Shown: in pieces, positions 814 to 56,400 of the stretch
How the letters are laid out: the number at the start of each line of letters is the position of its first letter
How positions within the stretch are numbered: position 1 is the stretch's first letter
Origin: Bugula neritina
Taxonomy: Eukaryota; Animalia; Bryozoa
DNA: 64,000 bases
Direction: 5' to 3'
Assembly: GCA_964035545.1 (NCBI GenBank)
Contig: OZ037773.1
Coordinates: 5,981,751-6,045,750, forward strand
The notes under the pieces: generated by a model
The model's input: the letters and a program-made list of their open reading frames with translations, nothing else
The model's database searches: none
Told to the model about the DNA's origin: nothing
Position numbers and translations under genes: made by a program

Positions 814-1757
814 CTTGTCTATGAGCATTGAGCCACATAGACCTCTACGACCAGCGCTGCGGTCTGCAGAAGTCAATGCGCAATCCTCAGCAGCCACAAC
901 CATTTCACACTTCAGCCCCAAGGCTTTGGCTCTCTCTATGGCCAGGCCAAAGTTTACTCGATCTCCAGTGTAGTTTTTCACAACAACCAGAGTTCCAGCT
1001 GTTGCAGGAGATGGCAGAGATTGATACAAAAATTTAAGCAGATCTAATTCTAAGTAAAAAAATCTGAAAACTTGCCACGTTTCATTCAAAAAACGATTCA
1101 ATAAATGAAACCAAGTACAGCAAATAAATGAAAACACTTCAGATGTATACAATAGTATAAAATATATAAAATAGATAAAATTGGGCACAGCATAAATAAC
1201 GAACCAGGATTGCCAGATGCACAGCGCAAGATAGTCTCATATATGATTTGTGAAGGTGGAGAAGCAAATACATTCCCACAAACTGCTGCTGTCAATAATC
1301 CAGGTCCTACGTAGCCTACAAGTACACACAAAATAAACTATAAATAGTCAAATATCGGATTTAAAAATGCAACAATTACAAATTTTAACTTGAGTATAAC
1401 TTTCGCAGAAAAAAATGAGAACTTGCAGGTTCCCATAAGTTTTCTTTTTTTAATGTATCAACGATCAATATTTGATATGCAAAATCGACACAACAAGCAT
1501 TTGTTTAGTAAATTCGCTATAGCCAGTAGTCATTATGATTTTTCCTAGTTATTCTTACCAGCCCAAGCTGGTTCATGACCACTTCCACCACCACTTATGA
1601 TAGTGACTTGACTTTTCTGTTTGATCGCATCTACATCTTTGCGTATCACTACGCGCCCTCCACACATTGTGGTCAAACCACTGTTTACCATAACCAAACC
1701 CTCAATAGCATCATTCACTGCTGTTTCTGCCGAATTGATAATTTTCTTACTTGTCAT
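814..1757 (-). CDS. TKFC: Triokinase/FMN cyclase (dihydroxyacetone kinase), N-terminal DhaK part. Coding exons 1757-1559, 1315-1205, 998-814; the gene continues beyond the window start.
   Basis: Spliced translation MTSKKIINS...[32 protein letters not shown]...VKNYTGDRVNFGLAIE...AGRRGLCG contains the DAK1 signature motifs (GGGSGHEP, GxVFASP, KNYTGD, GRRG). GT-AG junctions are phase-consistent. Confidence 0.95.
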
Positions 1758-2354
1758 TTTCACTAAATACCTGAGAAAAGTCACAACTAACCTAGTAAAG
1801 CAAAAGAGACGCAATTTAGTTTGATTTTATTAAAATCAGAACATATATTTAAGAGTAAGTCACCATCACCACGGTTATGGTGATTAATTATAACAAACTG
1901 CACCAGAAAAAAATCATAATCCAAATTTCGACGATTTGAAATTGATGATTATCATATTAATATTAATTACAAAATACTTAATTAAATTTAAGATCATAAT
2001 CAATATTATGACATAAAATTTATTACAAGTTACATAACAATAACTATAAGTAAACAAATTAAAATATAAGCATAATCATAATGAATAAAATATTTATTAA
2101 CATAAAATTTAAATTTTATAATTATTGTCAAACTCAATCACAATGTCAAAGAGTTCGAGATGATAATCATAATGATAATCATAATTATAAATTATAAAAT
2201 GTTAAGCTTAAACCCACTACAATTTCAAACTTAAATCATTATTATATGACTGCTGTAAACCAAATTTAAAGGAATATTATACTAAACAGCATAACTATTT
2301 AATTTTATCATACCACCCTACTGTGAGCTACCAAAAGCAAATCTAGTAGTAGTT

Positions 2355-3656: not shown

Positions 3657-6600
3657 TTACATAAGCCAATCCAATAATCCTCCTGCAGACTTAGAAGATC
3701 TGATTGAAGATCTGGAGCTCTCAGCTATCCTATGTCTGTCTCTTGGGCCTGAGCTTCGCCTTCGGCTCTTTCTGGAGCCCTCATGTGTATAATGGCTTCT
3801 ATTATCTCTGTTTAAACTTCTTTTCCTGGGAGAAGTTTCGTTCTGGTTATTGTATTTGCCATCTTTTGCACTAGAGCTTTGCTTTCTGCTTTTTCTTGAG
3901 CTCCCGTACGTATGATGGCTCTTATTATCTCTGTTTGAGCTTCTTTTCCTGGGAGAAGTTTCGTTCTGGTTATTGTATTTGCCATTTTTTGCGCTAAAGC
4001 TTTGCCTTCTGCTTTTTCTTGAGCTCTCGTACGTATGATGGCTCCTATTATCTCTGTTTGAGCTTCTTCTCCTGGGAGAGGTTTCGTTCTGGTGATTGTA
4101 TTTGCCATCTTTTGCACTAGAGCTTTGTCTTCTGCTCTTTCTTGAGCTTTCGTACGTATGATGGCTTCTATTATCTCTGTTTGAGCTTCTTCTCCTGGGA
4201 GAAGTTTCGTTCTGGTTATTGTATTTGCCATCTTTTGCACTAGAGCTTCGCCTTCTGCTCTTTCTTGAGCTCTCGTACGTATGATGGCTTCTATTATCTC
4301 TGTTTGAGCTTCCTCTCCTATGAGAAGTTTTAGGCTGGTTATTATATTTAGCTGGAGATCTCCCAGGTTCGTTTGCATGTGTTGAATGTTGGGTTGAAAC
4401 TCTTTGAGGTTCGATTGCATTTGTTGAGTGTTTGGTTAAAACTTGCCAAGGTTCTGTTACATTCGTTAAGTGCTTGGATGAAGATTTTCGAGGCTCCGTT
4501 GCCTTCATGGAGTGCTGGGCTGAATGCCTTTGAGATTCGATTGTATTTGTTAAGTGTTGGGCGGAAGACCTGTGAGGTGAGGTTAAATTTCTTGAGTGTT
4601 TGGTTGAACCTGATTGTCGACCTCTAGATGTCTCAACATTACCTGCAGACCTTGACAGCTCTCTGGCTTCCAGTATTAGCTGGTCAATGCTTTTTGAGGC
4701 TATCGGTGCCTGATTGGTATGAGCTGAGCTTTTCCCTGCGTTCAATTTCAGCCCAGATAGTCTAATTGAAGATGATCTCTTTAAATCATATGATGCTGCA
4801 GACTGTGCTTTCCTATCGGCTAATGATTTTCGGATAATTTCCTGTGCCATTGAAACCTTACTGTGGTCTCGTGCCATTTGATTATGATTGGCAAGCTTTG
4901 CTGCAGAACTTCTCAAGAGGTTGGCAGCAGAACCTAAACTTTTATTTTCATTTCCTGATTTCCCATAACTAAGTAAACCAGACATCTGAAGCCTTCCACC
5001 AGCTGTTTGATTTCTAAAATCAGGTGCATGCTTAGAGTCCTTTTCAAAATTTACTGTAGATTTTGCTGTTTGGAAACTTGAAAGATTTGCAGCAGAAGCT
5101 AAATGTTTATTTTGACCTGATTGAGAATTGAAGCCATTTGCTAATAACTGCTTTTCACTTAAATATGACTTTTTATTATCCACTGTATGTGGTGACAAAT
5201 TTTTCTTTGGCTGCGTGGGTTGCCGAGCTTTTGTTGAGTCTTTTGCTGGTGACAAATTTGACGATTTAGCAACACCAGAAGTTTGTGATTGCGCTTTTTC
5301 ATTACTTGCAGAAGATTTACGTTTACGGATTCTCTTCTTAGATCTAGAGGATGCAGAACTTTTGGTTTGACCAAATTCAGATGGCTCTGTAAAACTTCCA
5401 TCTTCTGTGCTATTGCGTTTTTCCTGTGTTACACGTGCACCTTCTTCCATTGCATTCAAGTCATCTACAAAATATAAAAGTCATCTACTTAATAAACAAA
5501 TTTTTCTCATAATGTGAAAGTCTTCAAGAGATTATATAACACGTATACAGAATACACTTTTTTATCTGTTTTTATGCTGATATATTTTTTATGATACAAC
5601 TAGTACATTCTTAGTGTGATCTTAATATGCTTAACTAATTTGACAATACTGTATATGACATAAGAACACACACACAAACACACATACACACCAATTCATG
5701 CACGTCAGCATACATGCCAACATAGATGTATATATGAATTCACTACCATTGAATGGATACCTACATCATCCTATACTTCACCATTGTTTTATGCCACCAT
5801 AGCTTATATACTTACTTGGAAGCATTAATTGTTTCCGGAGCATATACGTATTTTCCTGGTATTCATCTAGGGTAGAAAGTACGTCAGGAAACGGGCTACA
5901 AAATAGTTTACAGGAGACATTACTCTATTATTCCAAATGCAATTATTTTGTTTGTAAGTTGTTTGACTAATCTTCAATCACTGAACCTAAATTGCTGGCA
6001 AGCAGCTGCCATAACTCATAAGACTAACGAGGCCTGAGTTCATAAGCCTTTTATAGAGATTGTGCAGGACTTTTTCCTCTAATTAGAACTGTACTCTATA
6101 GACTTGTTTAATTTTTGAAGTCCTGCTTAGTGATAGAAAAACAGTGGCCATGGGCTAATAAAGTTTGTTGGTAACCTGAGCTGGCGTACTGAAAAGCAAC
6201 TCTGTGACTCATAAACACATGGTCAGATGACAAAGTGACTACATGCTTACTCTTTTGAAGATTTCTTAGATTCTTGCTTCGGCAGGCATGAGTCAAAATT
6301 ACAGTCTAATTTATGCTCGCCTTTACAGTCACATGATCTAAACGATAACAGAATGACAAAGATTTTAATTTTATTTACTCTAACCACACAGAAAATGTTT
6401 TTGGCACAATAACAGCTTGAGTTGATGCTGAGCTTTGTAATGTGTAGTTGTGAAATTTAATCTCTTAAACATATTATAGATAAGAGTTATATATATAAGC
6501 ATTTTCTCAGCCAGTGCTATTCAAGGAACTATACAAGATAAAAGAAAGTGTACGGAAGTAGATATGGCAACTTACAAGAAGCCACAGAGTAATGTACAGT

Positions 6601-20400: not shown

Positions 20401-22284
20401 AACACGTTTACACTGAAGTCTATTTTTATATCGATAAGCTGCAAATCTGGTAGTTGGATCTTCATTGTCTTGTGCATGGGAGTAAACTGTAGCTTGGCGT
20501 CAGCGTGGACGCCATATTGGTTGAGAGTCAGCCTGGACTTGGTGAGCCACATGCTCTTCTCTGGCCACCAGAGGGCGTGGTCAGACCAATCTGCTGGAAC
20601 AGCTGCAGGAGTAAAACAGAAAAGAGTACTAAGGATATATACTATACAGTACACTGCTATATCATACATTACAGCCGTTACTATTTATCTGAATGAAGAC
20701 TGCATACAACACACAGAGTATAATTTAATAATTCCTAATGCAGGGCCATTACTCTGCCATTCCACACACCATTAACCAATAGTTACCATATTAAGGACAT
20801 GAGTCACAAGAGTGGAATGTAAAGTGACCACCAGATCCCTGAAGTGACCACGCGACCTAGGTACAAACTGACCACAACATTGCCCTCAACACCACAAGTG
20901 TTATAAGGTTATGTACACAAACTGTAGAGAACACGAATCCAAATGGCTTTCAAGTGCCCCACCCTTGTTTAGAAACTAGATTGGAGTTTCCGAATACATG
21001 GAGTGACACCCCAGAACATGGGAAAAGAGATTATTATGTGTATATGATGTCACCAGGAAGGATATGGCTGCAGTAAGAAACATGATGAGAATTAAGTAAC
21101 AGTAGCTCTAGCAAACAAAACAACTACTTTGCATCACAGCATAAATTACATAACATTTACAAATAACATGAATAATGACTGCCACAGACTGACTGCTACC
21201 TATCTCAGTCCCAATATCCTCACAATTTTCTCAAACAAATCTGAGTGCAGTAGTTTAGGGGACCTCGAGTTTGGAGTTGGGGAGATAACCCCAAACCACC
21301 CTAAACTACTGCACTCATTCACCACCAACTTAGAGCTGCTTATAGAACAATCGGTTGACATATGCACCTCTGTATTATACACAGCACACAGTTACTACTA
21401 GTATAACTTTATGTAGAATCAGTCACTTCTACAGAAATATTCATGTTATGCTGATTGAGTAATAAAAAAACACTAGAAACCAAAAATCATAATGATTGAC
21501 TCATCAAGAAATCAATTATGCTGTAGCACCTTGATTGCCAGAGAATAAAATAGCCTGAGGCCAATCTATAGTGTAGAACTCAGGCTGCCTTACTACTGAG
21601 TACTTAGCACTACCAACTACCAAGTACTCAATACTACCTAGTACTAAGTGCTACTTAGTACTATATAGTACCTACTAGTACTTCGTACTACCTAGTACTA
21701 TATAGTACTAGGTAGTACCCAGTACTACCTAGTACTAAGTACTACCTAGTACTTAGTACTGAGTACTACCTAGTACTATATAGTACCTAGTACGATATAG
21801 TACCTAGTACTATATAGTACCTAGTACTATATAGTACCTAATATTTAGTGCCATTTTCAACCCCCAATTTTATAATTTTCTTGTAAGTAATCGAGATCAA
21901 AAATCCTTTTACCAAGCTTACAAGTTTGGTGCCGAAAAATAGGTTGCTTGTTTGCTACATTTGAATGAAAATTACTAGCATTTAATTAAACGGAACAAAT
22001 CTAACTTGCTAGCCTTATTGGAATACAAAGACAATCCTCTAATTTATTGATTATTTGTTATTGACCAGTGCATTTCACCATTCAATAGACACACACAAAT
22101 TATCCACATGTAAACAACTGAAGTTATCCCCCCTAGTAATGTACAAAAGCTCACCTAGTGATTCTACAAGTTTGAACATAACTCCGCCAATGTGAAGGTC
22201 ACCACTGACTCTGAGTGTCTTATCAACCGAGAGATCAGTGATGTGTATAGACACCAGCCAAGTCCTTTCTTGATTAGAATCCAT
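11481..22284 (-). CDS. FERMT: Kindlin / fermitin (UNC-112/FERMT family), 698 aa. Coding exons 22284-22155, 20602-20369, 18884-18673, 17362-17148, 16136-16056, 15379-15250, 14868-14675, 14333-14209, 13802-13696, 13429-13202, 12808-12662, 12293-12095, 11575-11481.
   Basis: Family motifs [32 protein letters not shown], WLDSxKSLMEQG, [47 protein letters not shown] and MFYKLTSG. All 12 introns are GT-AG and phase-consistent; total 2097 nt. Confidence 0.97.
12836..13050. repeat. 17-bp minisatellite (taggtaatgttatattg) in a kindlin intron
   Basis: Direct inspection; about 10 degenerate units. Confidence 0.85.
17487..17835. repeat. 39-bp minisatellite, about 7-8 copies, in kindlin intron
   Basis: Unit tatgatgtacacttacagtaacatatttacactatacag. 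It explains the spurious [13 protein letters not shown]. Confidence 0.95.
18143..18470. repeat. Adjacent 16-bp (gtgacagagtggtgat, 6 copies) and 13-bp (aatacagtaatac, about 10 copies) minisatellites
   Basis: Direct inspection of 18143-18241 and 18286-18470. Confidence 0.9.
18898..19340. repeat. 29-bp duplication (18898-18975) and 13-bp minisatellite (ccatatactacac, 19020-19340) upstream of kindlin coding exon 3
   Basis: Direct inspection. It explains the [12 protein letters not shown]. Confidence 0.9.
19610..19726. repeat. Short foldback element, copy 2
   Basis: Arms gcagcacaaatttgggggtgactgagtgc / gcactcagcaactccaaactttgtgctgc, followed by atctagt. Confidence 0.7.
21242..21317. repeat. Short foldback element, copy 3
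   Basis: Perfect 19-bp arms tgagtgcagtagtttaggg / ccctaaactactgcactca, followed by ttcaccaccaac, similar to the end of copy 1. Confidence 0.75.
21590..21842. repeat. AGTACT/CTAG-rich low-complexity, self-complementary tandem repeat
   Basis: Repeated tagtacctagtactata and agtactacct units. Confidence 0.8.
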
Positions 22285-23010
22285 GATGAATAGTATGGAC
22301 AGGTGCTTCTCAGTAGAGCATGAACACCCAGTGGCAGACTATAGAGGGGAAAGTGACAAGTGACAGCAGTAATGAGTGTGTTTAGTAGTCAAGGTGCTTG
22401 CAAGTGTTCATCCAAGGAATGCAGTAGTCACATAGCTATGGGACGCTGTTGTCATACACTCTAGTGTTGCCAGGAAATACGGCCTTCCTTAATCTTACAG
22501 CTTCTAGTATCTCTTCTTTATGTAATAATCTACAAAATGATGTAAACTCGGAGTTTAAACAAAGAACAAAGTATAAAATTGATTACTAATCACATGGGAG
22601 ACGTTAATCATAATACTGTAAAGAAAGCAAATGGCACACTGCCGATCTAGATGAAAGATAGCTCTGTTTGCAAAACAAAACAAATATTACAGTATTACTA
22701 GTTTTTGTTCAAAAACAAAAAAGAAATTGACTCATAGTGATAGAAAAACTGACACTAGATAGCTGTTTAGTACTAGTCAATCTTCACTGACCTAAAATAA
22801 AATGTGCGATCATGCAGAAGCCAAGCATGCAATATAAAGTAACATCCCCCACATATTATACAACATTACTAATTATATACAGGTGTAGTTATGATGCAAT
22901 AGATATATACAGCTACTTGACTGCTAGCTATTCATTTGAGCAGCTGCTAGAAAATCTAGGAAGCTTCAAGTTGCTTTATTGCTTCCTTGTACAATACCGT
23001 AATTCTTAGC

Positions 23011-28800: not shown

Positions 28801-30486
28801 ACCAGCATCTTCACAAACAGAAGGAGAGGATCAAAAATGTGCACTTGCTTTCACTGGTCAACTTGGTAGCAGCCAGTGTTTTTTCATCAAAAGTAATTAG
28901 TTAGCAAAACATGACTGGTTCAACAAGAAAAGCAGCCTTTACTTTTTGCATTTTTGGCATATTTGGCAAAAACGCACTCAGTAGATGTTTTCCAAAGGCA
29001 GGGGCACTATTTACTCTTATGTTGGCTTAAAACGATTATGAAATGACGTTTCAACCGCACAGTGCAAGTAATGGATGAGATACAGGAGTGGGATAAGAAT
29101 ATACACAATATCTCTTATGCAATAATCTACATGGGTATCATATTAACTTGTGTGTAAAGACACTTTTTACTTGCAATAACTCAGAGTAGACTGAAAAATT
29201 ATGCCAAAGTTACACTATTATATTACCAAACGAATAACTGAGTGACATCAACAATATTATGGCCTGCAACTTGAGAGGACTTTGCTTAGGAGTTTGAATT
29301 TCAGTAAATCAGTGAATGACAAAAGAAATCAACCGCTACTAAAAATTCTGAACTTAGGTTATCGGCAACTTTCTTAGATCACAAGACTTTGACTCTATCT
29401 TTCACTGAACTGTCAGAATAAACTTAAAAGCAAATGTAAGTTGAATACATAATCAGAAAAAATTTATAATTAACTGCACTGATCCAGTAAACGTAAGGGT
29501 TTGTAAGGTATTCTACTGAATAATCACTAGCATCAGCATGACAGTGAAATACAGATACTCATCACTCATGCTATACTAATAGTAATAGTAATACTACTAG
29601 TACTAGTAGTGAACTAGTACTAGTAGCTCTTTACTCTTTACATTTACAGTCATTTACTGCAGTGCTAATACTTGAGCTTTGCTCTACTACAACTAGGTCT
29701 AGTACTACTACTACTACTATTAATAGTATTCTGCTAGACAGTAGTTACTAGTACTAGTAGTACTAGTACTTCACTAACACTAACGTACACGTACAGTAAC
29801 ACTCCAATTTGCATACTGATACTGGTACACATTATGATTATGATAAATAATTATTAATAATAATATAAATTGAATTACAAATCATCATCATAAAATATCA
29901 TTATGATTATGATTATTAGCATTTTTATTTAAGTCGAGCAATTCTTTTTCCACGTTATCGTTTGACTTTCACTTTCACTTTGGTGCACCGAAAGTGACTT
30001 CCACTTCAGTGACTTCCAGTTCCACTGTGACTGTGATTGTCATTGTGATTGTGTGTGAATTACTATTAGAATGTCACTATGTTTCTTACCTTTACCACAG
30101 GTAATATTGATAATATTGTATTGTTACATTATGTTTATTACTGTTACTACTTACTAGAGTATTTCATCTACGATAGACCTCTGCGAATGCAGTACACAAG
30201 GCTAATCTTCTCATAAAAAAATTGAATGAAAACCGCAACGGCTCGTAGCTATTCAATAACTATATGTTTTAGTAGTCTACTGAACTGGAATGGATAATAT
30301 ATAATTTGAATGTCATAGCCAATGTTCTTACGGGTGTTTCTATTGCCCTAGAACTTAAATTCATGTGGCGACATCGTATTATTTGACCGAAAGTTGAACC
30401 AGTTGCAGCTAGTTTTGGAAAGAAGGCTAAGAATATAAACTATAAAATAAAGAGAGGATAACTTTAATTATTATGGCTTCAAGCTC

Positions 30487-30669
<183 letters not shown>

Positions 30670-30674
30670 AGTAT

Positions 30675-31127
30675 GGGTATGAGTTACTGTCGTTTCGTAT
30701 ACAAACTGCTGTCCATTTCGTACACAAAATGAATAAAGATGCTTGTTTACTTTTTTGTTGCATCACAGCATGTATCTTTAATTCACACCTCTCATGTCAC
30801 CTATTGATCAATGTTTTGTATTATCTATTATAACAAATACGTTGATACTTATTTTATATATATGATTATAGTGAACTGCAAACTACTATAATTTTTTGGT
30901 TTTTTTATCAATGTTTTGTATGAGTATTAGATTTAATCTATTATTAGTGTATGTTATATATACTAATGCAATTGTATGACTCATACATCAAATGATAAAT
31001 AAATATAAAAAACTATGTATTTTAGTTAATTTATTTTGGTGTATACGATTAGACGAATTATCATGTGTACGAAACGACCTAAAAAAGTGGGTATAAAAAA
31101 TGACTTGTATACAAATTGACCTGTACC
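30675..31127. mobile_element. Possible MITE-like element with inverted sub-terminal subrepeats
   Basis: gtcgtttcgtatac and catttcgtacac at the left, versus gtgtacgaaacgac and gtatacaaattgac at the right, around an AT-rich core. Confidence 0.3.
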
Positions 31128-31449
31128 ATACACAAAACATTTCACTATACTAACTAACTTTTAGATGCGTAATATGAGAAAAACAACTCTCTAAAGGTAA
31201 AATTTTCAACTTAATTACATCTGAATCTCTAGCAAATTCCAATTTGAAAGAAATGTGGGAACTTTATTGTCACTGAATAAAGAAGCAATAAAAGTTATGA
31301 CCAGCTACGGCCAATCATAGTTCAAACCAAATTGGCTGCAGATAGTCTAACGGTAGCGCGAGTCCTTTTTGTTGCATTTTTAACTTGAGTACGATATTTT
31401 ATTCATTCTGATAATTAAACCATAGGCATATGATTAATAAATTAAGAGC

Positions 31450-33563
31450 ATGTTTTTCACAGTTCCCGGCTCAGTTTTGTTAAAATGTGCAAGAAGAAGT
31501 ATCTGCTTTCTTCGTATGAGCAAAAAAATTCAGATAATCGACCAAAACATGTTGATGAAGTCAAGTACTGACATGATGATGGTAATGTTCTGTTGTTAGT
31601 TGTACTAGTAGTTGTTCAGGTTTTCAATTTGAATTTAACTTTAACCTTAGGATTCAGATTGACATTGTCACTGTTTCTCTATCAGTATCATTAAAAGTAA
31701 AACTAAAAATAACAAAAATAATAAATTAGAAACTTCAAAGCAGTAAAAATTAATACTAATAGATTTATTATTGAAATTATGATTAAGATTTTATCATTGT
31801 TTTGCTCAAAAGTAAAAGACTCATAGTCATAGCGAAAAAGAAAGTTAATAATAATTTAAATTTAAATTGTGCGTTGAAAGCAAATTGAAACTGTGTCATT
31901 TATTTGATCATGACCACATGCTTGTCCTAATAAAGTTTGAGGCTATGCTTCAACTTGTAGATATAAGTATAATCTTTATTTTGGCGATTGTACGACTAGC
32001 ATGATCATGATGACCTGGCAATGTGGCATTAACAGTCACATATCTAATTCTATTGTGATCATATGATAGTTAAAATTATATTGCAATTATTATTATATAT
32101 ATATCTGTGATTTAAAATAATTTATAGAAGTATATTCATAGTAATTTAGTTAATAACATTTAACAATGAATGATTTAATAGTAATTTAAGTGCATAAAAT
32201 AAAAGTAACAGTCGTAACAATAATATCACCTCATAAGTTTTATGCATTTTAATGGCATCATCAATAATTTTAAATTCAACAAGTCTTTTTTATAATTGGT
32301 GATATATTTTAGCCAACATCCATCTTGTCTTGTAAGCATTGTTCTACTAAACACCCAAACTATGCCTATGAAGTAAGTAAAGACCCAACTGAGTGGAAGT
32401 ATGTTGAACACTTGCTGCCAAAGACTTTTGTACCAGAAGTCCCCAAGTCAGCATTACATAACTATCCCACCCCCTCTGGCTGGGTGCCTCAACAAGGTTT
32501 GAAACTTCACTTGTCATCATTAGTTTTTACTTCAGTGTTTAGTTTATTAATTTCAAACATTAGAGCATCATTTTTGCTTGCATAAATTTTAGCTTTTCAA
32601 TTTATTATTAGTGACAAAAATATTTTTGATATTTTAAACATTTGATTTGCAAAGTAAAACTGTATAATCATTGCTGTAAGGATCAGTGTTTGCCTGCTTA
32701 TAGAAGAGAAGTATGCTAAACTACCTTACTATATTTCACGGACTAAGAACCATCAAATGCCTATATATATTAAAGAAAGGACGGATAGCCCTCTCAAGTT
32801 CACTCACATCGGCAACATTAGTGGCAATATCTGGGTGAGTTTAGACTGCTCTTCATCTTGTACTTGAGACAATGCTTACTGCGGGTTTAATATTCTCGGT
32901 CGTTTCATTCAGTACTAAGTTTTAAATCACTAAAGTAACTGATGTAATGTTTTCCTTTTCAATTATTTTTATTTAAATGTCTAGTATTGTAAGTTTATTG
33001 AGCAGCATGTACTCTGTGGAATTCTTATGCTCTTAGTATCTTAAGCGTGGGAACATTGTTATATACTGGAATTATTGAAACAATCATTTTATTAGGTTGT
33101 GAAGTTTTTTGCCTATTGTTTAGTAAGACAACTCCCAAAACAAACTGCTTTACCTACAATTTCAAAAGTTATTTTGCTATTTCTGAAGAGTTGACATTTT
33201 AGTTTATCATTTGTTAAATTACCACTAAGAATTTTCCGATGCTCATCTGGTTGAAGTTATTCACTAGAAGCTGCTACAGATTTGGCTAAGTGAAAATAAA
33301 TTCTCAACTTTACCACATTGATCATGGTATACTGTAAAATATATAAAGTATGAAGCAGCATTGCCGTATATACAGAATGTTACAAGGGCAGACAACTATT
33401 GTTGTAGGCGTTAGATGCTGATATCCGAGAACTGTTAGAGGCTAGTAAAACAGACCCAAACTATTTAGTTTTGACGCAGGTTCACGAGCCCGGAAGATTC
33501 ATCAGGGTCAAGGGCGTTCATTCAGACACCATAGCCCAGTTTCTTATAGACAAAGGCTTTTAA
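31450..33563 (+). CDS. MRPL49: Mitochondrial ribosomal protein L49 (mL49), 200 aa. Exons 31450-31581, 32313-32496, 32704-32834, 33408-33563.
   Basis: Translation contains EWKYVEHLLP, YPTPSGWVP, LPYYISRTKNHQMPIY, GNIWAL, TQVHE...IRVKG and C-terminal FLIDKGF*, all typical of mL49. The N-terminus is basic and presequence-like, and junctions are phase-consistent. Confidence 0.93.
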
Positions 33564-46587: not shown

Positions 46588-49500
46588 TCAACCACCCAGC
46601 CCTTGCTTTGGTCTCTGTAAGATGTTGAGAAATTTGCCACGGGTCATCTCATGAGCTACAAACACAAGCAAAACCCATACGGTAGTTGAGAGTATACGAC
46701 ACAATATAAACTATTGCTCTAGCTGAAAATATCTTCAAAATGCTGAAAAGGGAAACTGGAAATAAAGTCATAATATCTCTAAATATGAAACCTTAAAGTT
46801 TAACTACTTACTAGAATATGCAGCTTATAGTTAAGCATGAGCATTTTATATGATAAAGAGAGGTAGATTATAGTATCAGATGAGGTAGTTTATATTACAA
46901 GATGAGGTAGTTTATATTATAAGATGAGGTAGATTATATTATAAGACCAGTTTAATACACGGCTGCAAGATACAAGAGGGCAACAGAATTTCCAACAAAA
47001 GTATAAACAAGAACATTAATTAATATCCTTACCTTCATCCAGCCCAAGTTGATAGGCTAAGTTCTGCAACTGACGCACTTTATCAAGAAGCTGGGCAGGG
47101 GTCAGATTCCCCAACTCCTGCACCATACTGATATCCTCAGTCTCCAACTCATTCATCCACTTTGGTTTGTTAGAAGCGGAACTGCCAGGGTACGACTATA
47201 AAGAGGGAGGGGCTCTGAACTCATAGCTACTGCCTTCATTATGAAAAACTCAACAGTGTAGTTTAAAACTGTCAGTTATAGTCGACTGATGGTTTCATCA
47301 TACTTGACTATTAACTTTTAAGATTTGTTCGATTTCTTTAACAAACATTAGGATTGAGTTTTAGCAACTCTAATACAATACTTTTGAAAACTTGAATTTT
47401 ATTAAATAAAGTAGCATTTCTTTACAAAAGTAAAATCCATTATAATTTAGGCCAAACTATAAAACCTAATAGAAGCACCTGTTGAGTTTTGTCAGATAAG
47501 CTTTCTTAAAATCTCAATCAAATTTCACTAAAAACTATTCCAACATTTCTAATGAAAAGTTACGACACAGTTAAAATAATCAGCATATTGCTAATACTAC
47601 CTCTATCTAACACCCACGTATAACTGCATAAAAGATTTGAAATTACCTTCAAATTTAAAAACTAATGCAATACAAACGCACATTGCTTGCTGTTGATAAA
47701 AACCTGATTTGTCTGCCCATGTTTTTATGATCGAACAAATTTCATAAAAAACTATATTTTATGACCAGAAAATAATATTTATGATTTTCAAGCTTAACTT
47801 ACATTTGACAGTCCACCCATTGCTGCAAATTCATTCACTCCAGGCACTAAAATATGAAAATACTTTTACACAGTAGATAAGATAACTCTACAACTTGATG
47901 CACCTGAAATAATCTGTGATAATTTTTAATCTAACAGCAATAGGGTCATTCCGCGTCAAATCAACCAAATTTCAGAAAGTCCCACGCCTTTGCGTCTCAG
48001 ATTTTGTTCATATTTCCACCAAATGAACCTACACATGTATTGAGTGCTATTCTTGAATATTTCTGGCCTGACACAAAAACTTTTTGAGAAATGAATATTT
48101 CCACGAACAAAAGTTGGGAAAAATTTTGAGGAAAATTTGCGATTTTTACTTTTAGACCAATTTGTAAACGTCCATATCTCCATTATTTTTCTAGTCTGAA
48201 CCTTGAAATTTGGTGTGTGATTTGATAACACCTATCAATTTGCACTAGTAGTAACACATACTGCAGAATACTTTGTGTGCATATATACTAAGCCATTGAA
48301 AATTGGCAATTTTTTATGAATTTTGAAAAATTTTGAATATTTGCCACATCACAAAAGGCAGTAATTTTTATTTTACTTCCATAAATTTTTATCCATAAAT
48401 AGTTGATTATGGTTACTTTATACTCCTTAATTTGTGTAATTTTTAAAATAAATAAAAGTTGTAGATTTTTTCAGGATGATGAATATTATTCTTAGCCTGG
48501 GCGAATTACTAACCTGATTAGGGTGCGGACCAATCTGCTATATTTAGGCACATCTGTTTCAAAAGCCACAATTATTTCCGGCATGTATTAAACACCACTG
48601 TCATCGAATTAGTTAGGCCTATTGTGTTCAGGGCCATGGTGTTATATTTGGGTATGTTTTTTGAAGCTACTCTTGCCTCAGCTACTTAATGTACTTGATT
48701 CCAGCAAGATTTCAGCTGTTTCACACCATTCACTCACAGAAATAACAATTGCTATCTGAAACCTAATGGGAATATCATATAATGCCGATCGGCAGAATTT
48801 TTCTTACGATATTACACACAAATCAGATTTTATCGTAATCTTCAGTAGATTTGAAATATATAGGAAACATATATGTATCTACTTGATATTTTGAACAATA
48901 TGAATAATAAAAATGTATGATCCCAACATATTATATTGAAAAATTGCATTTTGCCGATTTTCGTACGCATACCATTTTTCCGTGCGATTTACTTCAAGTT
49001 TGGACAATATAAGGACGTCCAAATTTATGAGTCTACAAAATACACTAAATGACGTTACAGAAAATACTTGTTTGAAATATTTTACTGTATTCAAACATCG
49101 GGTTACATCCTTGTGAAGTTGGGCGAATTTTCACATTTTCTTCACTTTGGGTGTCTATATCTTGAAAAATGTTATTTTAAAAATTACACAAATTAAGGAG
49201 TATAAAGTAACTATAATCAACTATTTATGAATAAAAATTTATGGAAGTAAAATAAAAATTAATGCCTTTTGTGATGTGGCAAATATTCGAAATTTTTCAA
49301 AATTCATAAAAAATTGCCAATTTTCAATGGCTTAGCATATATGCACACAAAGTATTCTGCAGTATGTGTTACTACTAGTGCAAATTGATAGGTGTTATCA
49401 AATCACACACCAAATTTCAAGGTTCAGACTAGAAAAATAATGGAGATATGGACGTTTACAAATTGGTCTAAAAGTAAAAATCGCAAATTTTCCTCAAAAT

Positions 49501-52500
49501 TTTTCCCAACTTTTGTTCGTGGAAATATTCATTTCTCAAAAAGTTTTTGTGTCAGGCCAGAAATATTCAAGAATAGCACTCAATACATGTGTAGGTTCAT
49601 TTGGTGGAAATATGAACAAAATCTGAGACGCAAAGGCGTGGGCCATTGGTTGAGTTGACACGGGATGACCCAATAGTAAAACAGAAACAAATCAAAAATT
49701 TTCTAAACTCTGAATATTTTTAGATTTAGTAAACTTAACCTGCCTATCAAATTCTTCCTCTGAAAATTTCCTAGAAAAAGTATTTACAACTAGTACTTTT
49801 CTTGGAGACACTTTAAATACAAAATGTGTTCCATGCTTCAAAGTAACATCCAGTAATTAAAATTCAACAGGCTGACAGAAATATTCGGAGTTGCATGCTC
49901 TACATACTTTGTTCTGGCCATAACTCTGGTGACGCTCTATCCTCCAGGTTCTCTAAACTCATCAACTTGTATGAATCATTATCATATTCTACAACATATG
50001 TTAGAGTTATCTACTCTCGTCATATTCTACAACATATGTTAGAGTTATCTACTCTCGTCATATTCTACAACATATGTTAGAGTTATTTACTCTTGTCATA
50101 TTCTACAACATATGTTAGAGTTATTTACTCTCGTCATATTCTACAACATATGTTAGAGTTATTTACTCCTGTCATAGGCTACACACTAGTCTCCATTACT
50201 ATCTATATTCTGCACAGTTTTTCACACAAATGGACTTTTTTGAGAAAAATGAATAGAATTCTTCATACATGAAGACTCCAACTGCAGTCAGTAAATGGCC
50301 ATAAACAAAGTTGCATAACCGAGATTCAGGGAGACATCACTGTATGTATTGAGGTGCAACACTAGCTTCTACTTGTTCACCTTGCATTACAAAATGGGGC
50401 TATGCTGGTGCCCTGACAAAATCTTCAGTCTTTTCTAATAATAATTCAAAGGACTGTTTTTAGATAAGGTGAACTGTTTAGCCTGCACCGAATTATAACA
50501 CCAGCAGTTTTGTAAAATAATTACACAGACACAAAATCAATGAGCTGCAATATGGCAACCAATAATTTCTACAGCAATAATTGCAGATACCAAGCACAAG
50601 AAACAACGCTTAGAGTAAAATTTGGAGTTTAAGGCAGAAACACTACTTTCACATTTCTATACTTCATACTTGAAGCCAGAAAAAGTGAGTGTAAATTGCA
50701 TTTATGGCCAAGAGACGTTCAAAAAAGAAAAACACCAGTCGCTGTAAGAATAATTTCAAGTTTGAAAAGATTCGAAACATTACCACAGTTATGCTGCTCT
50801 ACACAATGTAGATTTACGAAACATTATTTTATATAATATTATTCTACATTAATGCTTATAGCAACTGAGCTAAGCATTAAAAAAACTGAGAAAATGCAAT
50901 TTGAATAATAGAAAGTGAAGCTACATTTCACAGCTGCTTGATAGAAAATGATAATAGCAATAACGGCATCAATCATAAAATACCATTCAGTTTTGGGTAG
51001 CAAAACAGTGTGCTTTTTCTACAAACATCTCATTAGATACAATACATCTACAGTTCTACAAGATATAAGGTTAAAAAAAATCTATAAGGGAAAATGTATA
51101 CTACTATTATTCTGCTTTATTCACATGGTATGTTTCACATATAAAATATATCCAATAATATAAACTGAAGTGTTCAACTATGAGATGAGATCTAGTTCAA
51201 TGTGAGTGATAGCAAGCTTCACGAAATAGTAAACTAGACACATGAAACATCAAAAAGTAGCAAAACGTGACTACTCCTAAGTTTGACTGTAACACTGGCT
51301 AAGTAAGGGACAGCGATGATAATAAGCTGACTTCATTAAACTCATGTTGAGCAGCAAGCTGTATTTGTTAGTGTAAGTGTGAGAGTAACACAGCAATTTA
51401 AAATCTGAATAACTATAGTATGAAAAGTAACAACTTCTCCCGTTGACTGAACTTGAACTACAAGAGTTTAATCAATAGCAACTATGAAATTAATAGAAAC
51501 AGTAAAGAGTAAAATTATAACTAAAAAATTTGTATCTGCTGTCACAGCAAACTGACTCAACATTTATCCAATTCAAGTCATGACTCAAGCAAGCAACATC
51601 AAGTCAAGTTGAGTTCACACAAGTAGATCGAGTCAATTTGCAATAACTTGCAAGTATTTGAAAATGTCAATAAATACAATACACTGAGGGTATTAAACCA
51701 TCAGACACACTGAGTAGTTCAAATAAAAAACATTGCAGCTTTAGATCTAATTATTTAATAGTTAATATTAAGCTTCATTGAATAAATAATAATAGTAATC
51801 TAATCAAATAAGTTGGGCCCTACAAAACTTCTATAAATAGCGTAAGAATAATTTGATGTTATTATGAGTAAGAGTTATCAAAACAGATAAACTCACAATA
51901 ACCAGGCACAACTACTTTTACTTGTAGTCTTACAGCTCTGTTTCAGTCCGAATTACAGTTACCAGTAATAGTGTGTTAATATATCATTATTACAATTGAT
52001 AACTATTAGTCTTGCCTGCTTTTTACCTTCAATTATAGTCTGCAAAAAAATTAATCAATACTTGAAATGACTTACAGGGAAAGTTCAAGAGCAACCCATC
52101 TGTAAGCTCAAACTAAAATCTATATTCATAATTAACTGATGGCAATTACCATCACAATCCATTATCATAATGATAATACGAAGAATCAAGATGGTGATCA
52201 TGGTGGTGTGTGACAAGGATCACTTTAGGTTTAATATCAACTTCAAGTTCATCATAAATCATGGTCAATTATTAGTATTACCTTCAACTCTAACAATCAT
52301 CATATCAACTTACTTTTGGAATTTGTTAATCTGACTCACATGAGCAACTGCAATGAAAATTGTCTACTTGGTCACACAAGGACAATCAATGAATCATGAT
52401 TATCATTGTGATGGTGCCAATCACTCAATCACAATGATAATCATGTTGGTATAGTCATATTAATATTTATATTAAATTTGATATAAAATTGATAAACGAA

Positions 52501-53167
52501 ATGATTAACTTAAAATTTAATTGACTATGATTGACATTCACATTGTTATTAATATTATCACCATCATTGCCTCATTATCTAATTCTAATTGCAATTCTAT
52601 TATATTAACATAAAATATATTATATTATACTGATAGTGATACTCATATCGATAATATTGATAATCATAATGATAATGTAAATGATATTCATAACCATATT
52701 GATATTGTAATTGATACTCATACTCATAGTATTATAATAAATAATTATAATTATATTTATTCATAATCATAAATTTATTACAATCATTATTTTAATGAGA
52801 ATGGTAATGAGAACTATTACTATTGTTATCAGTATCACCTAAGGCTCGAACAAAATACTCATACTGATACTGCAAGTGTAATACTAATACTAAGTCTAAT
52901 AGTAATACTAATACTAATAGTAATACTAATAGTAATACTAATAGTAATTGTCAAAATGAAAATTGAACTTTCACTTTTAATGATTTCTACCTCCTTTAAT
53001 ACGGATCAGTTTGAATAAGTAAAAAGTTTAATTCTATACTTAAACAATTAGAAATTACATTTTACAAAACATGATTACACAATCGATGAAATACACTACT
53101 ATTAGCAAATAAATGAAATGAAATAATTTAAATTACCCGCATTCGACGTATGTCCATTAGCGGCCAT
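46588..53167 (-). CDS. LIN52: LIN52 (MuvB/DREAM complex subunit), 128 aa. Exons 53167-53137, 49988-49908, 47846-47803, 47195-47033, 46655-46588.
   Basis: Translation MAANGHTSNAEYDNDSYKLMSLENLEDRASPELWPEQMPGVNEFAA...KPKWMNELETEDISMVQELGNLTPAQLLDKVRQLQNLAYQLGLDEAHEMTRGKFLNILQRPK matches LIN52 hallmarks (LxSxExL, RASPxLWPEQ, LQNLAYQLGLDE, EMTRGKFLNIL). It is missed by the ORF track because the exons are short. Confidence 0.96.
46857..46945. repeat. 22-bp minisatellite, 4 copies (gatgaggtagtttatattataa), in LIN52 intron 4
   Basis: Direct inspection. Confidence 0.8.
47943..49671. mobile_element. Non-autonomous DNA transposon with ~500-bp TIRs and a 4-bp TSD (AATA); Sola2-like by termini (inference)
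   Basis: 47943-48451 is a near-identical inverted copy of 49172-49671 (few substitutions, one ~9-bp indel). Ends are GGGTCA...TGACCC, flanked by aata (47939-47942) and aata (49672-49675). The 720-bp core has no intact transposase ORF. Confidence 0.9.
49982..50171. repeat. 38-bp tandem repeat, 5 copies, containing the LIN52 exon 2 branch point and acceptor
   Basis: Units start at 49982, 50020, 50058, 50096 and 50134. The minus-strand unit reads cgagagtagataactctaacatatgttgtag|aatatga. Confidence 0.95.
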
Positions 53168-53465
53168 ATTTGACACTTCCGGTTTGTTAGTACTCTCAAG
53201 CACAAATATAGTTAAAGTTTTTTTATTTTTAAAAACACAATTTTTTATTTATATAACTGTTGTTGTTATAATTTTTGTTGTGTTTGAAAAAAAATTGTTG
53301 TCAAGTTTAATTGATTATTTTCAAGGCTAACTACATAAAAAATTTGCAAGGCATTCAATTTCATTGCACACTACGTAAGCAGCTGCACGGCGTTTTGTGG
53401 TGGTTTCGGTTTGCTGCAACATCTGTCTTAGCTGTCCTATAAAATATTATTCCTTAGCTGCTTAC
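53168..53465. promoter_or_regulatory. Bidirectional promoter shared by LIN52 and ALDH6A1
   Basis: Only 298 bp separate the two ATGs. On the minus strand there is an ETS-type CCGGAAGT (53175-53182) and a YY1-like AAATATGGCCGC over the LIN52 start codon. Confidence 0.75.
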
Positions 53466-56400
53466 ATGGCTGGAATTATAAGAAATCGCCTTTGTTCTCA
53501 AGTAAGTGCAGTAACAGTACTTGCTCGTTTCTCTAAGCAGTCTTTAACATTAAGTATGAGTTAGAGTATCACTATCAGTATCAGTATGACTATGAGTATA
53601 ACTATAAGTATAACATTAACTATAAGTATAAGTATAAGTAATAGTATAACTATAAGTAATTTAGTATAACTCAAAAAACTTCTATTAGTAGTACTAGTTG
53701 TAGTACTAAGACTAGTAAGAGTAAGTACAACTCGAACTACAAACTCAAAGTTCTGCAAGTTCATAAGCATCAAATGTTTAACTTTATGATTAATACATTT
53801 TTCTTGTACATGCTGGTGCTCTTTGACCATTTAAAATTCCATCAGCTGTTGAAATATAGGTATTCAATTAAGTTGATCAGTTTAAAAAATTTAATTAACT
53901 TGTTGCTAGTCTTTGCTATTTAAGCTAGCCAAAATATTTAATCCTTTAATTATTTAATAAAATTAACAAACATGCAAAGCTATGCTTTAGACTTTTAAGC
54001 TGGCATGATTTGTGATTTGTTTTAATGAAAGCATTAGGCCTATATAATAGATTAGCAGATTCATTTATCTCGTTGTTATGAATATTTGTTTGCTGCTGCT
54101 GCTGTTTGGTGACTGTTTGTAGTATTTTATTATTTTTATTTATTTGTCACCGGACACATTAGTGTAGGCCTAATGCAACTATAGTTAGAGTATTAGCATG
54201 TTATTTGTTTATTTACAAATGTTGATTTGAGTATGTTGTAGAAGAAAAATTATAGGCTACTAGAGGAATTATATATACCTATATATTACTAATACTTCAA
54301 CATTTTCATAGCATTGTGTTACATTTTAACTCAGTTCACATCTATTTCATTTTAGTTTTAAATATCTGAAGCTGAGGGGATTTATAAATAGCGGAAGTTC
54401 TATATAATTTTACAGAGTGCAAGGAATGTAGTTTTCTTAGGGAGAGGGGGGGTGGGAGACATTGCATTGCATCCCATTTTGTGGGTTCCTTGTGAACTTT
54501 TATAACCCGCTTTCTTCCAATGTGGGGTGACATGTTGCCACATCTTGTAAATACTTTAAATGAGCTTCTATTTGAAATAATCCAACAGAGTTTTGACTTT
54601 TGATTTTTTCATTCACTTTTCATGCCTACTTATATTATAGCCAGTATTTATACTGAATTTAGCAGCGTGTTGTCATGTCTGTGATATGCTATAAATCAAT
54701 CAATGATTGTGTTTTGCTAAACTAACTCTGTGTATTCATAAATATTTTAGGCACTTCAACTTCAGAGGAGCCTCCGTAATGGGTACCACCTAAGAAGTGT
54801 GGTAAGTGATATCTCTACACTGATCATAAGTGAAATATTAGCGAGTATATGCATATCTCTATATTTAGCAACTAGATGTTGTCACAAGTAATTTATATTT
54901 GATACTTGCAAGGGCACAGTTGAAAGCTTGGTTAGCTTTGAACTCACGAATAGATTTTTATATATTTAATAATATGTATATTTTATATAAGAATGTATAG
55001 TTGTTATATTATATATATGGTATATGATAGTATGGATGTAATTTTATTACCAACTTTTAGAGCACCACCAAACTGTTCCTGGATGGCAAGTTTGTAGAAT
55101 CCAAGACAGATGAGTGGATCGATCTTCACAACCCTGTAAGTGTTACATTCTATTATATTCTAATAATTTCTTCTAACTCAGTAGTTCGAATAAATCGTTT
55201 TTATAACCTGTAAAACATATTATATATAATTTGTCTCATAAGTATGTTTTTTTATCTCCTTTGAGATGAATGAGAAACCCAGCACTTAGTTTCAGACACC
55301 TACTTGTTGCTAAGTTTATGGGGACGTGGCACACCCGCATTTATATTTATAGTTTTCTCGCTCAATAAAATCTAATGGTACATGCATATTCTTAGTCTTT
55401 ATACTGTAACCTATTCCCTCAGGTGTCTAACTACCTTTATTGGCCTGAGTCACCTTCCATCAAATGTGTTAGTTTATTAAAACAATTTGTACACTTTGTC
55501 TAAACTCTAAACCTTCTGTTTAATGTGTTAGTTTATTGAGTTTTTATGATTTTAACCTCACAAGGTCAAAATAGCATATTTCATATAAAAACGATACTGT
55601 CACCAATATCGCAGTTATGTTACTCTTGCTATGCTGGACATTTTGCTTTCTCCGGTATGATAAATAATGTGGACAGCCTTGTGATGGGATCAACTATTAC
55701 TAATAAGGCGCTTGTTAGCTAGATACCTTGAAGTTACCTTCTCTCTACTCTTCCCTCCAGGCCACCAATGAAGTGATCACCCGGGTGCCCGTGTCTACCA
55801 GGGCTGAGATGCAGGCAGCAGTCGACTCCAGTGCCGAGGCATTCAAGAGCTGGTCTCAGACCACGGTTCTGACTCGGCAGCAAATTATGTTCAGATTCGC
55901 TGACTTGGTTCGAAAAAATCTGGTAAATTTTTAGAACATTAAATTTTTTTGCATTTGCTGAAAAAAATTATTAAAGTATTATCTAGTACTTTATAGTATC
56001 TCGCTCTTGCTGCCTTTATAATTTAGTATCACACATGTAAGGTTTCTGTTTGTATGATGTTTCAGAAAGATATTGCTGCCAACATAACTCTGGAGCAAGG
56101 AAAGACCCTTGTGGACGCTGAAGGGGACGTCATGAGGGGACTTCGTAAGTTCTGATAGTGTTTAAACTTCAACTACATCTGTACATCTGTACTGGGTGTA
56201 TACTCCATATATACTGAATGTATACTATGTATATAGTATATACTGAATGTATACTCTGTGTATACTGAATGTATACTCCGTATATACTGAATGTATACTC
56301 TGTATATACTGTGTGTATACTCTGTATATACTGTGTGTATACTCTGTATATACTGTATGTATACTCTGTATATACTGTATGTATACTCCGTAAATAGATT

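Follow-up and report, generated by a model that had tools for sequence, protein, structure and literature searches.

Drifting six-base tandem tracts near the starts of conserved genes in the bryozoan Bugula neritina

We analysed a stretch of 64,000 nucleotides of the Bugula neritina genome (assembly GCA_964035545.1, contig OZ037773.1, positions 5,981,751 to 6,045,750 of the forward strand), called the window below, for which a sequence-only reading had reported tracts of the pattern A-N-T-N-N-N in the promoter-proximal first introns of conserved genes. We found five tracts of drifting hexamers, each beside a conserved gene of housekeeping type (TKFC, MRPL49, LIN52, ALDH6A1 and, probably, a kindlin gene), and these tracts match no known repeat type. 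We tentatively read them, at somewhat less than an even chance, as the footprint of a promoter-proximal duplication process that is specific to one unit size. The gene names are supported by Pfam matches to Dak1 (TKFC), Img2 (MRPL49), LIN52, Aldedh (ALDH6A1) and Kindlin_2_N, and the exon and intron structures given throughout are read from the DNA, independently of RNA.

The tracts stand out in a scan that assumes no motif. When identity at lag 6 was compared with that at lags 1, 2, 4, 5, 7 and 8 in 120-nt windows, only five regions emerged from the 64 kb (2062–2188, 29743–29933, 31571–31758, 52599–53021 and 53507–53737). These are exactly the five loci of the sequence-only reading, and every hexamer it had quoted was found at the position it had given. 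The same scan detected no period-6 tract in the internal introns or the intergenic DNA of the window, in keeping with the earlier remark that internal introns seemed free of them. Identity peaked at lags 6, 12 and 18. Furthermore, period-6 runs of ANT (at least six of eight units) merged into 10 tracts, against a mean of 1.6 and a maximum of 5 in 50 second-order Markov simulations, and all 10 were confined to 29.56–30.07, 31.68–32.12, 52.51–52.99 and 53.54–53.73 kb. The stricter pattern (ANTNNN)5ANT, or ANTx6, matched 22 times in the window compared with 0.2 times in third-order Markov simulations, and no ANTx6 match was present in 81 kb of ciliate contigs of similar GC content from the same assembly. 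The six-base tracts are real and non-random, and to that extent the original description was partly confirmed.

The unit size is strict. We counted exact 6-bp tandem duplications, with units of 2, 3, 4, 5 and 7 bases as controls, and found 71 of them in the window: 12 in kb 29 and 10 in kb 52 (Poisson p < 2e-9 for each), 4 each in kb 31 and kb 53, and 0–3 in every other kilobase. Their density was 15.2 per kb in the tracts and 0.63 per kb elsewhere, a 24-fold difference, and six other host loci gave a background of 0.65 per kb. Duplications of the control sizes were not enriched (tract-to-elsewhere ratios of 0.4–2.5); only units of 6, and of 12, were. Many different hexamers were each found as doublets in the tracts.

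Location was tested against four start codons only, those of TKFC (1757, minus strand), MRPL49 (31516, plus), LIN52 (53167, minus) and ALDH6A1 (53466, plus). Twenty-three of the 71 six-base duplications fell within 1 kb of one of these ATGs, compared with 7.0 expected (p = 1.6e-7), and no other unit size was enriched near them. As the gene structures read, placement rests on an ATG and a GT donor for LIN52, ALDH6A1 and MRPL49 and, in the case of TKFC and kindlin, on an acceptor that closely precedes the ATG. The tracts would then begin 15–150 bp past the first-exon donor, itself either read or predicted, and lie inside the first intron within 1 kb of the start. The claim of promoter-proximal first-intron placement, as judged by the ATG test and these predicted introns, therefore holds in the window for five conserved genes. 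Between the two promoters at 30.1–31.6 kb we found no 6-bp duplication in 1.5 kb (30054–31633), which places the tracts on the transcribed side. Since they lie in first introns, they occupy both transcribed flanks at divergent promoters and not the DNA between the promoters. No tract was seen at the 5' ends of the window's open reading frames (ORFs) of unknown family (a 597-codon ORF at 3660–5450, and others at 34–36 kb and 37.7–40.9 kb).

The motif itself had to be redefined. An A at position 1 and a T at position 3 of each hexamer, as first described, are kept within sub-runs of 6–18 units; across whole tracts they are not, the phases of ANT being scattered. Identity at multiples of lag 6 (6, 12, 18 and so on) reached background within 3–5 units in four of the six segments analysed, a longer memory being present only in the regular arrays of LIN52 (52600–52990) and ALDH6A1, and coherent period-6 Fourier power was found in the ALDH6A1 tract only. 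ANT and the reversed TNA were equally enriched in the tracts of the window (1.66-fold and 1.62-fold), and the TKFC tract is of the TNA type. The enriched triplets come in self-complementary pairs (ACT/AGT, TCA/TGA, AAT/ATT and TAA/TTA), and ACA/TGT and AGA/TCT are depleted. The true core of the tracts is the self-complementary triplet A[C/G]T, of which ANT is merely a local description. Over the five tracts G is about as frequent as C, and ACT about as frequent as AGT, on each strand; one inverted match has both sense strands alike. A fixed A-N-T-N-N-N register or code is not upheld, as phase is lost, motifs differ between loci and the orthologous TKFC tract is less conserved than its flanks.

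The same pattern is abundant in the genome at large. In the assembly (216 Mb in 321 contigs, GC 33.5%, the large contigs being animal), each strand had 86,427 matches to (ANTNNN)5ANT, whereas the reversed control gave 39,299 and chance would give about 700. With S standing for C or G, (ASTNNN)5AST (ASTx6) matched 49,008 times, compared with 5,918 for its reversed control and fewer than one expected from base composition. Arrays of A[C/G]T account in full for the amount by which ANT exceeds TNA across the genome. Some of the ASTx6 matches, about 40%, turned out to be pure microsatellites of (AGT)n or (ACT)n, and the arrays of hexamer type are nearly always mixtures of AGT and ACT. Between 46 and 201 kb of contig C1 we counted about 12 ANTx6 clusters, or one per 13 kb, which is on the order of the gene density of the window.

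Neighbouring units differ in an unusual way. Among single differences between adjacent hexamers, 71 of 149 (48%) were exchanges between G and C, compared with 7.4 expected and with 13% outside the tracts (Fisher p = 1e-17), and transitions made up only 16 of the 149 (11%). In 86% of cases the swapped base had A on one side and T on the other (A_T or T_A contexts; odds ratio 4.5 relative to other W_W contexts, where W is A or T; p = 1.4e-4), so that such a swap turns the triplet into its own reverse complement. For AST cores six bases apart, the central base was the same 103 times and the other base 98 times; the remaining unit positions keep a memory of the neighbouring unit.

These differences bear on the explanation that the tracts are ordinary tri- or hexanucleotide microsatellites in decay, a chance effect of AT-rich sequence or an assembly artefact. 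Pure (AGT)n and (ACT)n microsatellites do exist among the ASTx6 matches, and the genome is rich in tandem repeats. Against this, Markov simulations gave about 100 times fewer matches, and the ciliate contigs, of similar GC content, had no ANTx6 match. An independent short-read run from another individual contains the same sequences, the enrichment is confined to six bases, and frequent G–C swaps with few transitions are the opposite of the spectrum that point mutation gives. We consider this explanation very improbable. The statement that the tracts are not one slipped microsatellite is borne out, since the motif drifts unit by unit through G–C swaps rather than transitions, and trinucleotide decay does not account for it.

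A comparison with relatives showed how fast one tract changes. With the first-exon ORF of TKFC as query, we matched contigs from other sequencing runs. Three of these (L040–L042) come from a relative with 96% protein identity and about 10% divergence in non-coding DNA, and they carry a tract with five 6-bp duplications at the orthologous TKFC site, where the predicted acceptor and intron structure of the 5' untranslated region (5' UTR) is conserved. The most regular part of the window's TKFC tract is missing from the relative, which has a different expansion instead. In alignment the tract showed 17% substitutions and 7 gaps in 318 columns, and the flanks 12% substitutions and about 24 gaps in 2,089 columns. 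A tract is thus still present at this site, and the rate at which its sequence changes equals or exceeds that of neutral DNA. The substitutions between species followed an ordinary spectrum (22 transitions, 18 exchanges of A and T, 11 other transversions and 3 exchanges of G and C). Since the swaps between units have no counterpart between species, they must either be made during duplication or be filtered by a constraint that is blind to AGT and ACT. In a more distant relative (L043, 70% protein identity), no tract was found in the 1.1 kb upstream of the TKFC ATG, nor was there a 5' UTR acceptor. Two vertebrate LIN52 loci contained no tracts, and the head-to-head ALDH–LIN52 pair is present in a vertebrate record (L034). 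A search for LIN52 in close relatives returned short metagenome contigs, which were without tracts and ended short of the promoter. Exon 2 of MRPL49 and an ORF inside the LIN52 tract gave no matches when used as queries.

Copy number was measured as k-mer depth in the independent short-read run of another individual. Depth was about 100, the single-copy level, in the flanks and the drifted parts of the tracts, and about 1e4–1e6 in the regular arrays (9e3–9.6e5 in LIN52), because thousands of loci share these simple units. Array k-mers cross-map in that run, which masks any polymorphism of the tracts. We found no terminal repeats and no element inside or bracketing the tracts. A transposon family as their source was rejected on these grounds; an explanation by a known transposon family, which the sequence-only reading had named as a refutation, disagrees with the single-copy flanks.

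A transposon or nuclease could still have left the tracts as footprints. A cut-and-paste element or an integrase-like enzyme, preferring open promoter-proximal chromatin and odd-palindromic A-S-T or T-S-A sites, would cleave repeatedly with a stagger; fill-in would leave short duplications, and resolution of mismatches or hairpins would flip the central base. The many independent exact doublets of different hexamers do resemble target-site duplications, the swaps are limited to self-complementary cores of 3–5 nt as at dyad-symmetric cleavage (odds ratio above), and perfect local inverted duplications are found within the tracts (at 52395–52445, a perfect 18-bp hairpin with z = −5.1, and at 29594–29626). 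It also counts for this reading that the 5' ends of genes are favoured targets of several DNA transposons. However, no terminal-repeat element lies inside or beside the single-copy-flanked tracts, with the symmetry axis on a base the stagger should be odd (3 or 5) rather than 6, and about a million events would be required across the genome. We therefore regard footprints of this kind as improbable.

Four features together point to a generating process and not to a fixed code: the restriction to six-base units, the presence of many hexamers as doublets, a memory of few units, and rapid turnover. Between the two options originally offered, a promoter-proximal code and a mutational process active next to promoters, the evidence leans towards the latter and away from the former in its fixed form. 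In the duplication process that we favour, units of exactly six bases, less often of 3 or 12, would be duplicated in tandem many times over and so build up locally periodic domains of low complexity. Each new unit would soon drift from its neighbour, with the central G or C of the core decided by something close to a coin flip per unit. These domains would take up the first 50–900 bp of intron 1 in conserved genes with constitutive expression. The process may be specific to the lineage, with a fixed unit size, and may act in promoter-proximal transcribed chromatin of the germline; its mutational nature and its dependence on germline promoter activity are what the sequence pattern suggests. Slippage in a 6-nt register and the repair of staggered breaks are candidate enzymologies.

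Several points weigh against a duplication process. To our knowledge, no slippage or repair process is specific to six bases or yields G–C swaps, and the mechanism is for this reason a postulate. The gaps in the cross-species alignment of the TKFC tract (19, 7, 7, 7, 3, 2 and 1 nt) are not clean multiples of six, although this is a single and ambiguous alignment. Three host genes of the Ras family were free of tracts, both in the intron that follows the first coding exon and in 0.6–1.5 kb of upstream DNA, so that either the rule is not universal or the Ras transcription start sites lie elsewhere. In addition, the sharp onset past the first exon and the presence of tracts at all five conserved genes would fit selection as well.

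Selection is the essence of another reading, in which the tracts are a chromatin element within the first 1 kb or so of transcribed DNA and duplication is merely the way in which the arrays are made and renewed. The element would consist of CpG-poor, AT-rich arrays with isolated G:C pairs in orientation-blind A-S-T contexts, and the selected property might be nucleosome organisation, easy melting, a barrier to methylation or silencing, or a set of sites for minor-groove proteins. The placement agrees with this, being consistent at all five conserved genes, right after exon 1 and on both sides of divergent promoters. Transitions, which would destroy S, are rare between units, and a G–C swap between A and T would be neutral under an orientation-blind constraint because AGT and ACT share their nearest-neighbour steps. 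The observed/expected ratio of CpG is 0.44 in the genome, a strong depletion such as arises under heavy methylation, and the CpG density of the tracts is about half that of the window. As single strands, the regular arrays fold worse than shuffled sequences (z = +3.5 and +2.0); by the same result, and with just the two local hairpins mentioned above, we rejected a hairpin or cruciform as the unifying feature of the tracts. There is also a precedent in the periodic promoter DNA and the periodic An/Tn clusters (PATCs) of Caenorhabditis elegans (PMC7706728; PMC4947018; bioRxiv 10.64898/2026.08.08.743475). However, motif, phase and length are not common across loci, and a six-base unit is out of step with the helical repeat. 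At periods 10, 10.5 and 11, the normalised power for WW, S and AA/TT indicators was at most 2.2 in all five tracts, so that the 10–11-bp signal is absent. Moreover, change in the orthologous TKFC tract outpaces that in its flanks, and its spectrum is an ordinary one, transitions included. A selected chromatin element is, in our judgement, somewhat unlikely.

The tracts might instead act in RNA, as a first-intron signal for intron-mediated enhancement or as arrays of weak U1 sites (GTAAT/GTATG) or branch-point-like sites (CTAAT) that affect splicing or prevent termination. As placed here, the tracts are in transcribed first introns and no further than 1 kb from the start, the zone where plant signals for intron-mediated enhancement act. 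A perfect 18-nt inverted match spans the LIN52/ALDH6A1 promoter (52627–52644 and 53564–53581), with the consequence that (ASTATC)n appears in the sense strand of either gene. On the other hand, the composition is strand-symmetric over the few tracts compared, five in all, whereas a motif acting in RNA should be oriented along the gene, and the motifs differ between genes. A signal in RNA seems to us quite improbable.

The tracts can be compared with several known systems. The PATCs of C. elegans introns are A/T runs of 10-bp period that serve as mechanical insulators; they extend through entire introns on the arms of chromosomes, with Helitron minisatellites as their source (PMC4947018; bioRxiv 10.64898/2026.08.08.743475), and according to a 2026 preprint they arose from tandem repeats that were remodelled by a transcription-coupled bias (bioRxiv 10.64898/2026.08.08.743475). 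Like PATCs, the tracts are abundant, non-coding, periodic, AT-rich intronic DNA with no fixed consensus in germline or constitutive genes (of housekeeping type, for the tracts, by gene identity). Unlike PATCs, they have a period of 6, A[C/G]T cores with G–C swaps, a location in the first 1 kb or so after the start, and single-copy flanks. The loose analogy with PATCs that had been proposed thus applies to architecture and fails on the absent 10-bp signal. A 10-bp WW signal is found at the +1 and −1 nucleosomes of ubiquitous and germline promoters and is absent from tissue-specific ones (Serizay et al. 2020, PMC7706728). It shares with the tracts a position on the transcribed flank of constitutive, often bidirectional promoters, but it is a statistical dinucleotide bias of period 10 bp over about 150 bp, and the tracts are overt 6-bp tandem duplications over 200–850 bp. 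The tracts belong to neither family because the defining 10-bp period is absent.

AT-rich promoter repeats occur in yeast, and the cryptic simplicity of Tautz and co-workers is said to consist of scrambled local repeats produced by slippage-like events. Promoter and 5' microsatellites (Sawaya et al. 2013, PMC3566118) are likewise short tandem repeats near gene starts. The tracts resemble both in being short tandem repeats concentrated near gene starts and scrambled local repeats. Promoter microsatellites, however, lie mostly upstream or in the 5' UTR, keep to a single motif and come in all unit sizes, whereas the tracts have a strict six-base unit, drifting motifs, swaps and a predicted place in the first intron; the range of unit sizes that marks cryptic simplicity in general is not seen in them, only six-base units. 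Promoter-proximal introns in plants are compositionally distinct and carry a dispersed, redundant signal for intron-mediated enhancement within about 1 kb of the start. That signal consists of strand-specific short motifs and not of tandem arrays. We found no description in the literature of six-base, strand-symmetric, first-intron tracts, and no described repeat class or mutational signature is known to share the strict six-base unit, the coin-flip G or C in self-complementary cores and the rapid turnover.

If the link to promoters holds genome-wide, the tracts would be a sequence-visible label on the transcribed flank of constitutive promoters, readable from raw DNA and useful for annotating start sites and first exons. 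They would then represent either a DNA transaction, so far unknown, that is coupled to germline promoter activity, or a second, independent case of mechanics-encoded non-coding DNA beside the nematode PATCs. We think it unlikely, though conceivable, that they are a new kind of promoter mark. Such a mark might be laid down by an enzyme that writes six-base duplications and A-S-T complement flips into the first kilobase of germline-transcribed DNA, which if true would amount to a new mutational signature with a defined enzyme. Alternatively, it might be a selected, orientation-blind physical code of six bases that organises chromatin or blocks the spread of methylation at about ten thousand promoters.

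Table 1. Tracts and promoter-side features of the window (positions in the window; exons, introns and promoters as predicted from the DNA)
Feature	Position	Strand	Remarks
TKFC first coding exon (Dak1 start)	1548–1770	-	Pfam PF02733, E = 8e-9; ATG 1757–1755
TKFC hexamer tract, TNA/SAT-AAT type	1860–2210	.	in putative 5' UTR intron, 100–450 bp upstream of ATG
Kindlin-side hexamer tract	29540–30065	.	different duplicated hexamers in chains, with (AST)n and (ASTAAT)n
Putative promoter and non-coding exon 1 of a minus-strand transcript	30092–30384	-	CpG cluster 30095–30384; presumed
MRPL49 promoter and exon 1	31300–31581	+	paired CCAAT/ATTGG boxes at ~31305–31345; ATG 31516; donor GT 31582
MRPL49 intron 1 drifting tract	31582–31900	.	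weaker continuation to ~32121; lag-6 region 31571–31758
LIN52 intron 1 tract	52140–52990	.	lag-6 region 52599–53021; ten 6-bp duplications in kb 52
Divergent promoter core	53137–53501	.	LIN52 exon 1 (-), 298 bp intergenic, ALDH6A1 exon 1; single-copy depth
ALDH6A1 intron 1 tract, (ASTATN)n	53545–53740	.	onset 43 bp past donor; lag-6 region 53507–53737

At TKFC, 6-bp duplications are located at 1860, 1954, 2071 and 2105 (lag-6 region 2062–2188), and the top period-3 window for TNA is 1913–2253. A candidate acceptor, TTTTCTCAG (polypyrimidine-CAG), with its end at 1771 and thus 12 nt upstream of the ATG, is kept in L040 and L042; for this reason the tract is assigned to a putative 5' UTR intron.

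The kindlin-side tract (lag-6 region 29743–29933) contains 14 exact 6-bp duplications, 12 of them in kb 29. The first coding exon of kindlin (22155–22338, minus strand) has an acceptor at 22338/22339, which implies a non-coding exon upstream. Candidate minus-strand GT donors at about 30092 and 30153 adjoin the tract, which probably lies just downstream of the non-coding first exon of a minus-strand transcript that would be kindlin. If the CpG cluster at 30.1 kb is kindlin exon 1, then the tract would be limited to the 0.5 kb nearest the promoter in an intron of 7.7 kb. CpG clusters as a general proxy for promoters were rejected, as exons are equally rich in CpG. Between the putative promoters at about 30.2 and 31.4 kb lies a near-perfect (GT)90 microsatellite (30490–30669), in a region without six-base duplications.

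The downstream exons of MRPL49 match Img2 (PF05046). In its tract, drift is visible unit by unit from about 15 bp past the predicted donor, and 6-bp duplications are at 31634, 31821, 31853 and 32000.

LIN52, which matches PF10044, has a predicted exon 1 at 53137–53167 on the minus strand (ATG 53167, donor 53136). Its tract is drifted and near-unique from 52140 to 52600 and consists of regular (ANTSAT)n and (TAATAS)n arrays from 52600 to 52990. On the other side of the divergent promoter, exon 1 of ALDH6A1 (ATG 53466) would end at 53501 before the donor GTAAGT (GT at 53502), followed by an intron 1 of 1,249 bp (53502–54750) and exon 2 at 54751–54803; the exons match Aldedh (PF00171). Tandem Repeats Finder (TRF) assigned the ALDH6A1 tract a period of 6 with 18 copies, and its period-6 WW power was 13.1. 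Separate from the tract, a high-copy element (k-mer depth 13,000–21,000 compared with about 100) covers 54400–54800, in the 3' part of this intron.

Other repeats of the window are of different kinds. A 17-mer minisatellite rich in ACT and AGT, (TAGTACTAGGTACTATA)n, occupies 21508–21907, in the intron that follows the first coding exon of kindlin. Nowhere else in the window are ACT and AGT so dense, yet the array is not six-periodic, and tandem repeats of the host in general favour ACT/AGT words. The 597-aa ORF at 3660–5450 (minus strand) is intronless and includes a coding tandem repeat of 123 nt (3751–4349, 4.9 copies); it had no Pfam match, and an exact look-up in a public collection returned no record. 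In the LIN52 intron, two near-identical ORFs of 91 and 88 aa (47959–48231 on the minus strand and 49392–49655 on the plus strand) are opposed about 1.2 kb apart, and this long inverted repeat is possibly an element of foldback type. A 38-nt tandem array follows the pair at 49982–50183.

Ciliate DNA was co-assembled with that of the animal and makes up many small contigs, recognised by Ras genes with in-frame TAA and TAG. Of the 30 loci in the Ras-family search, 24 are ciliate contigs (L001–L010, L012–L016, L018, L019, L021 and L025–L030), some of which end in six-base telomere-like repeats.

We also tried CCGGAAGT as a promoter marker from coordinates alone and found it uninformative: it was not enriched (2,039 occurrences compared with 2,911 for the control), is partly borne by repeats, and had 2 sites in the region listed for tracts. 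Inverted pairs of CCGGAAGT exactly 22 bp apart recur at many sites in contig C1 (for example 317947/317969, 1346919/1346941 and 4177843/4177865) and are probably part of a dispersed repeat.

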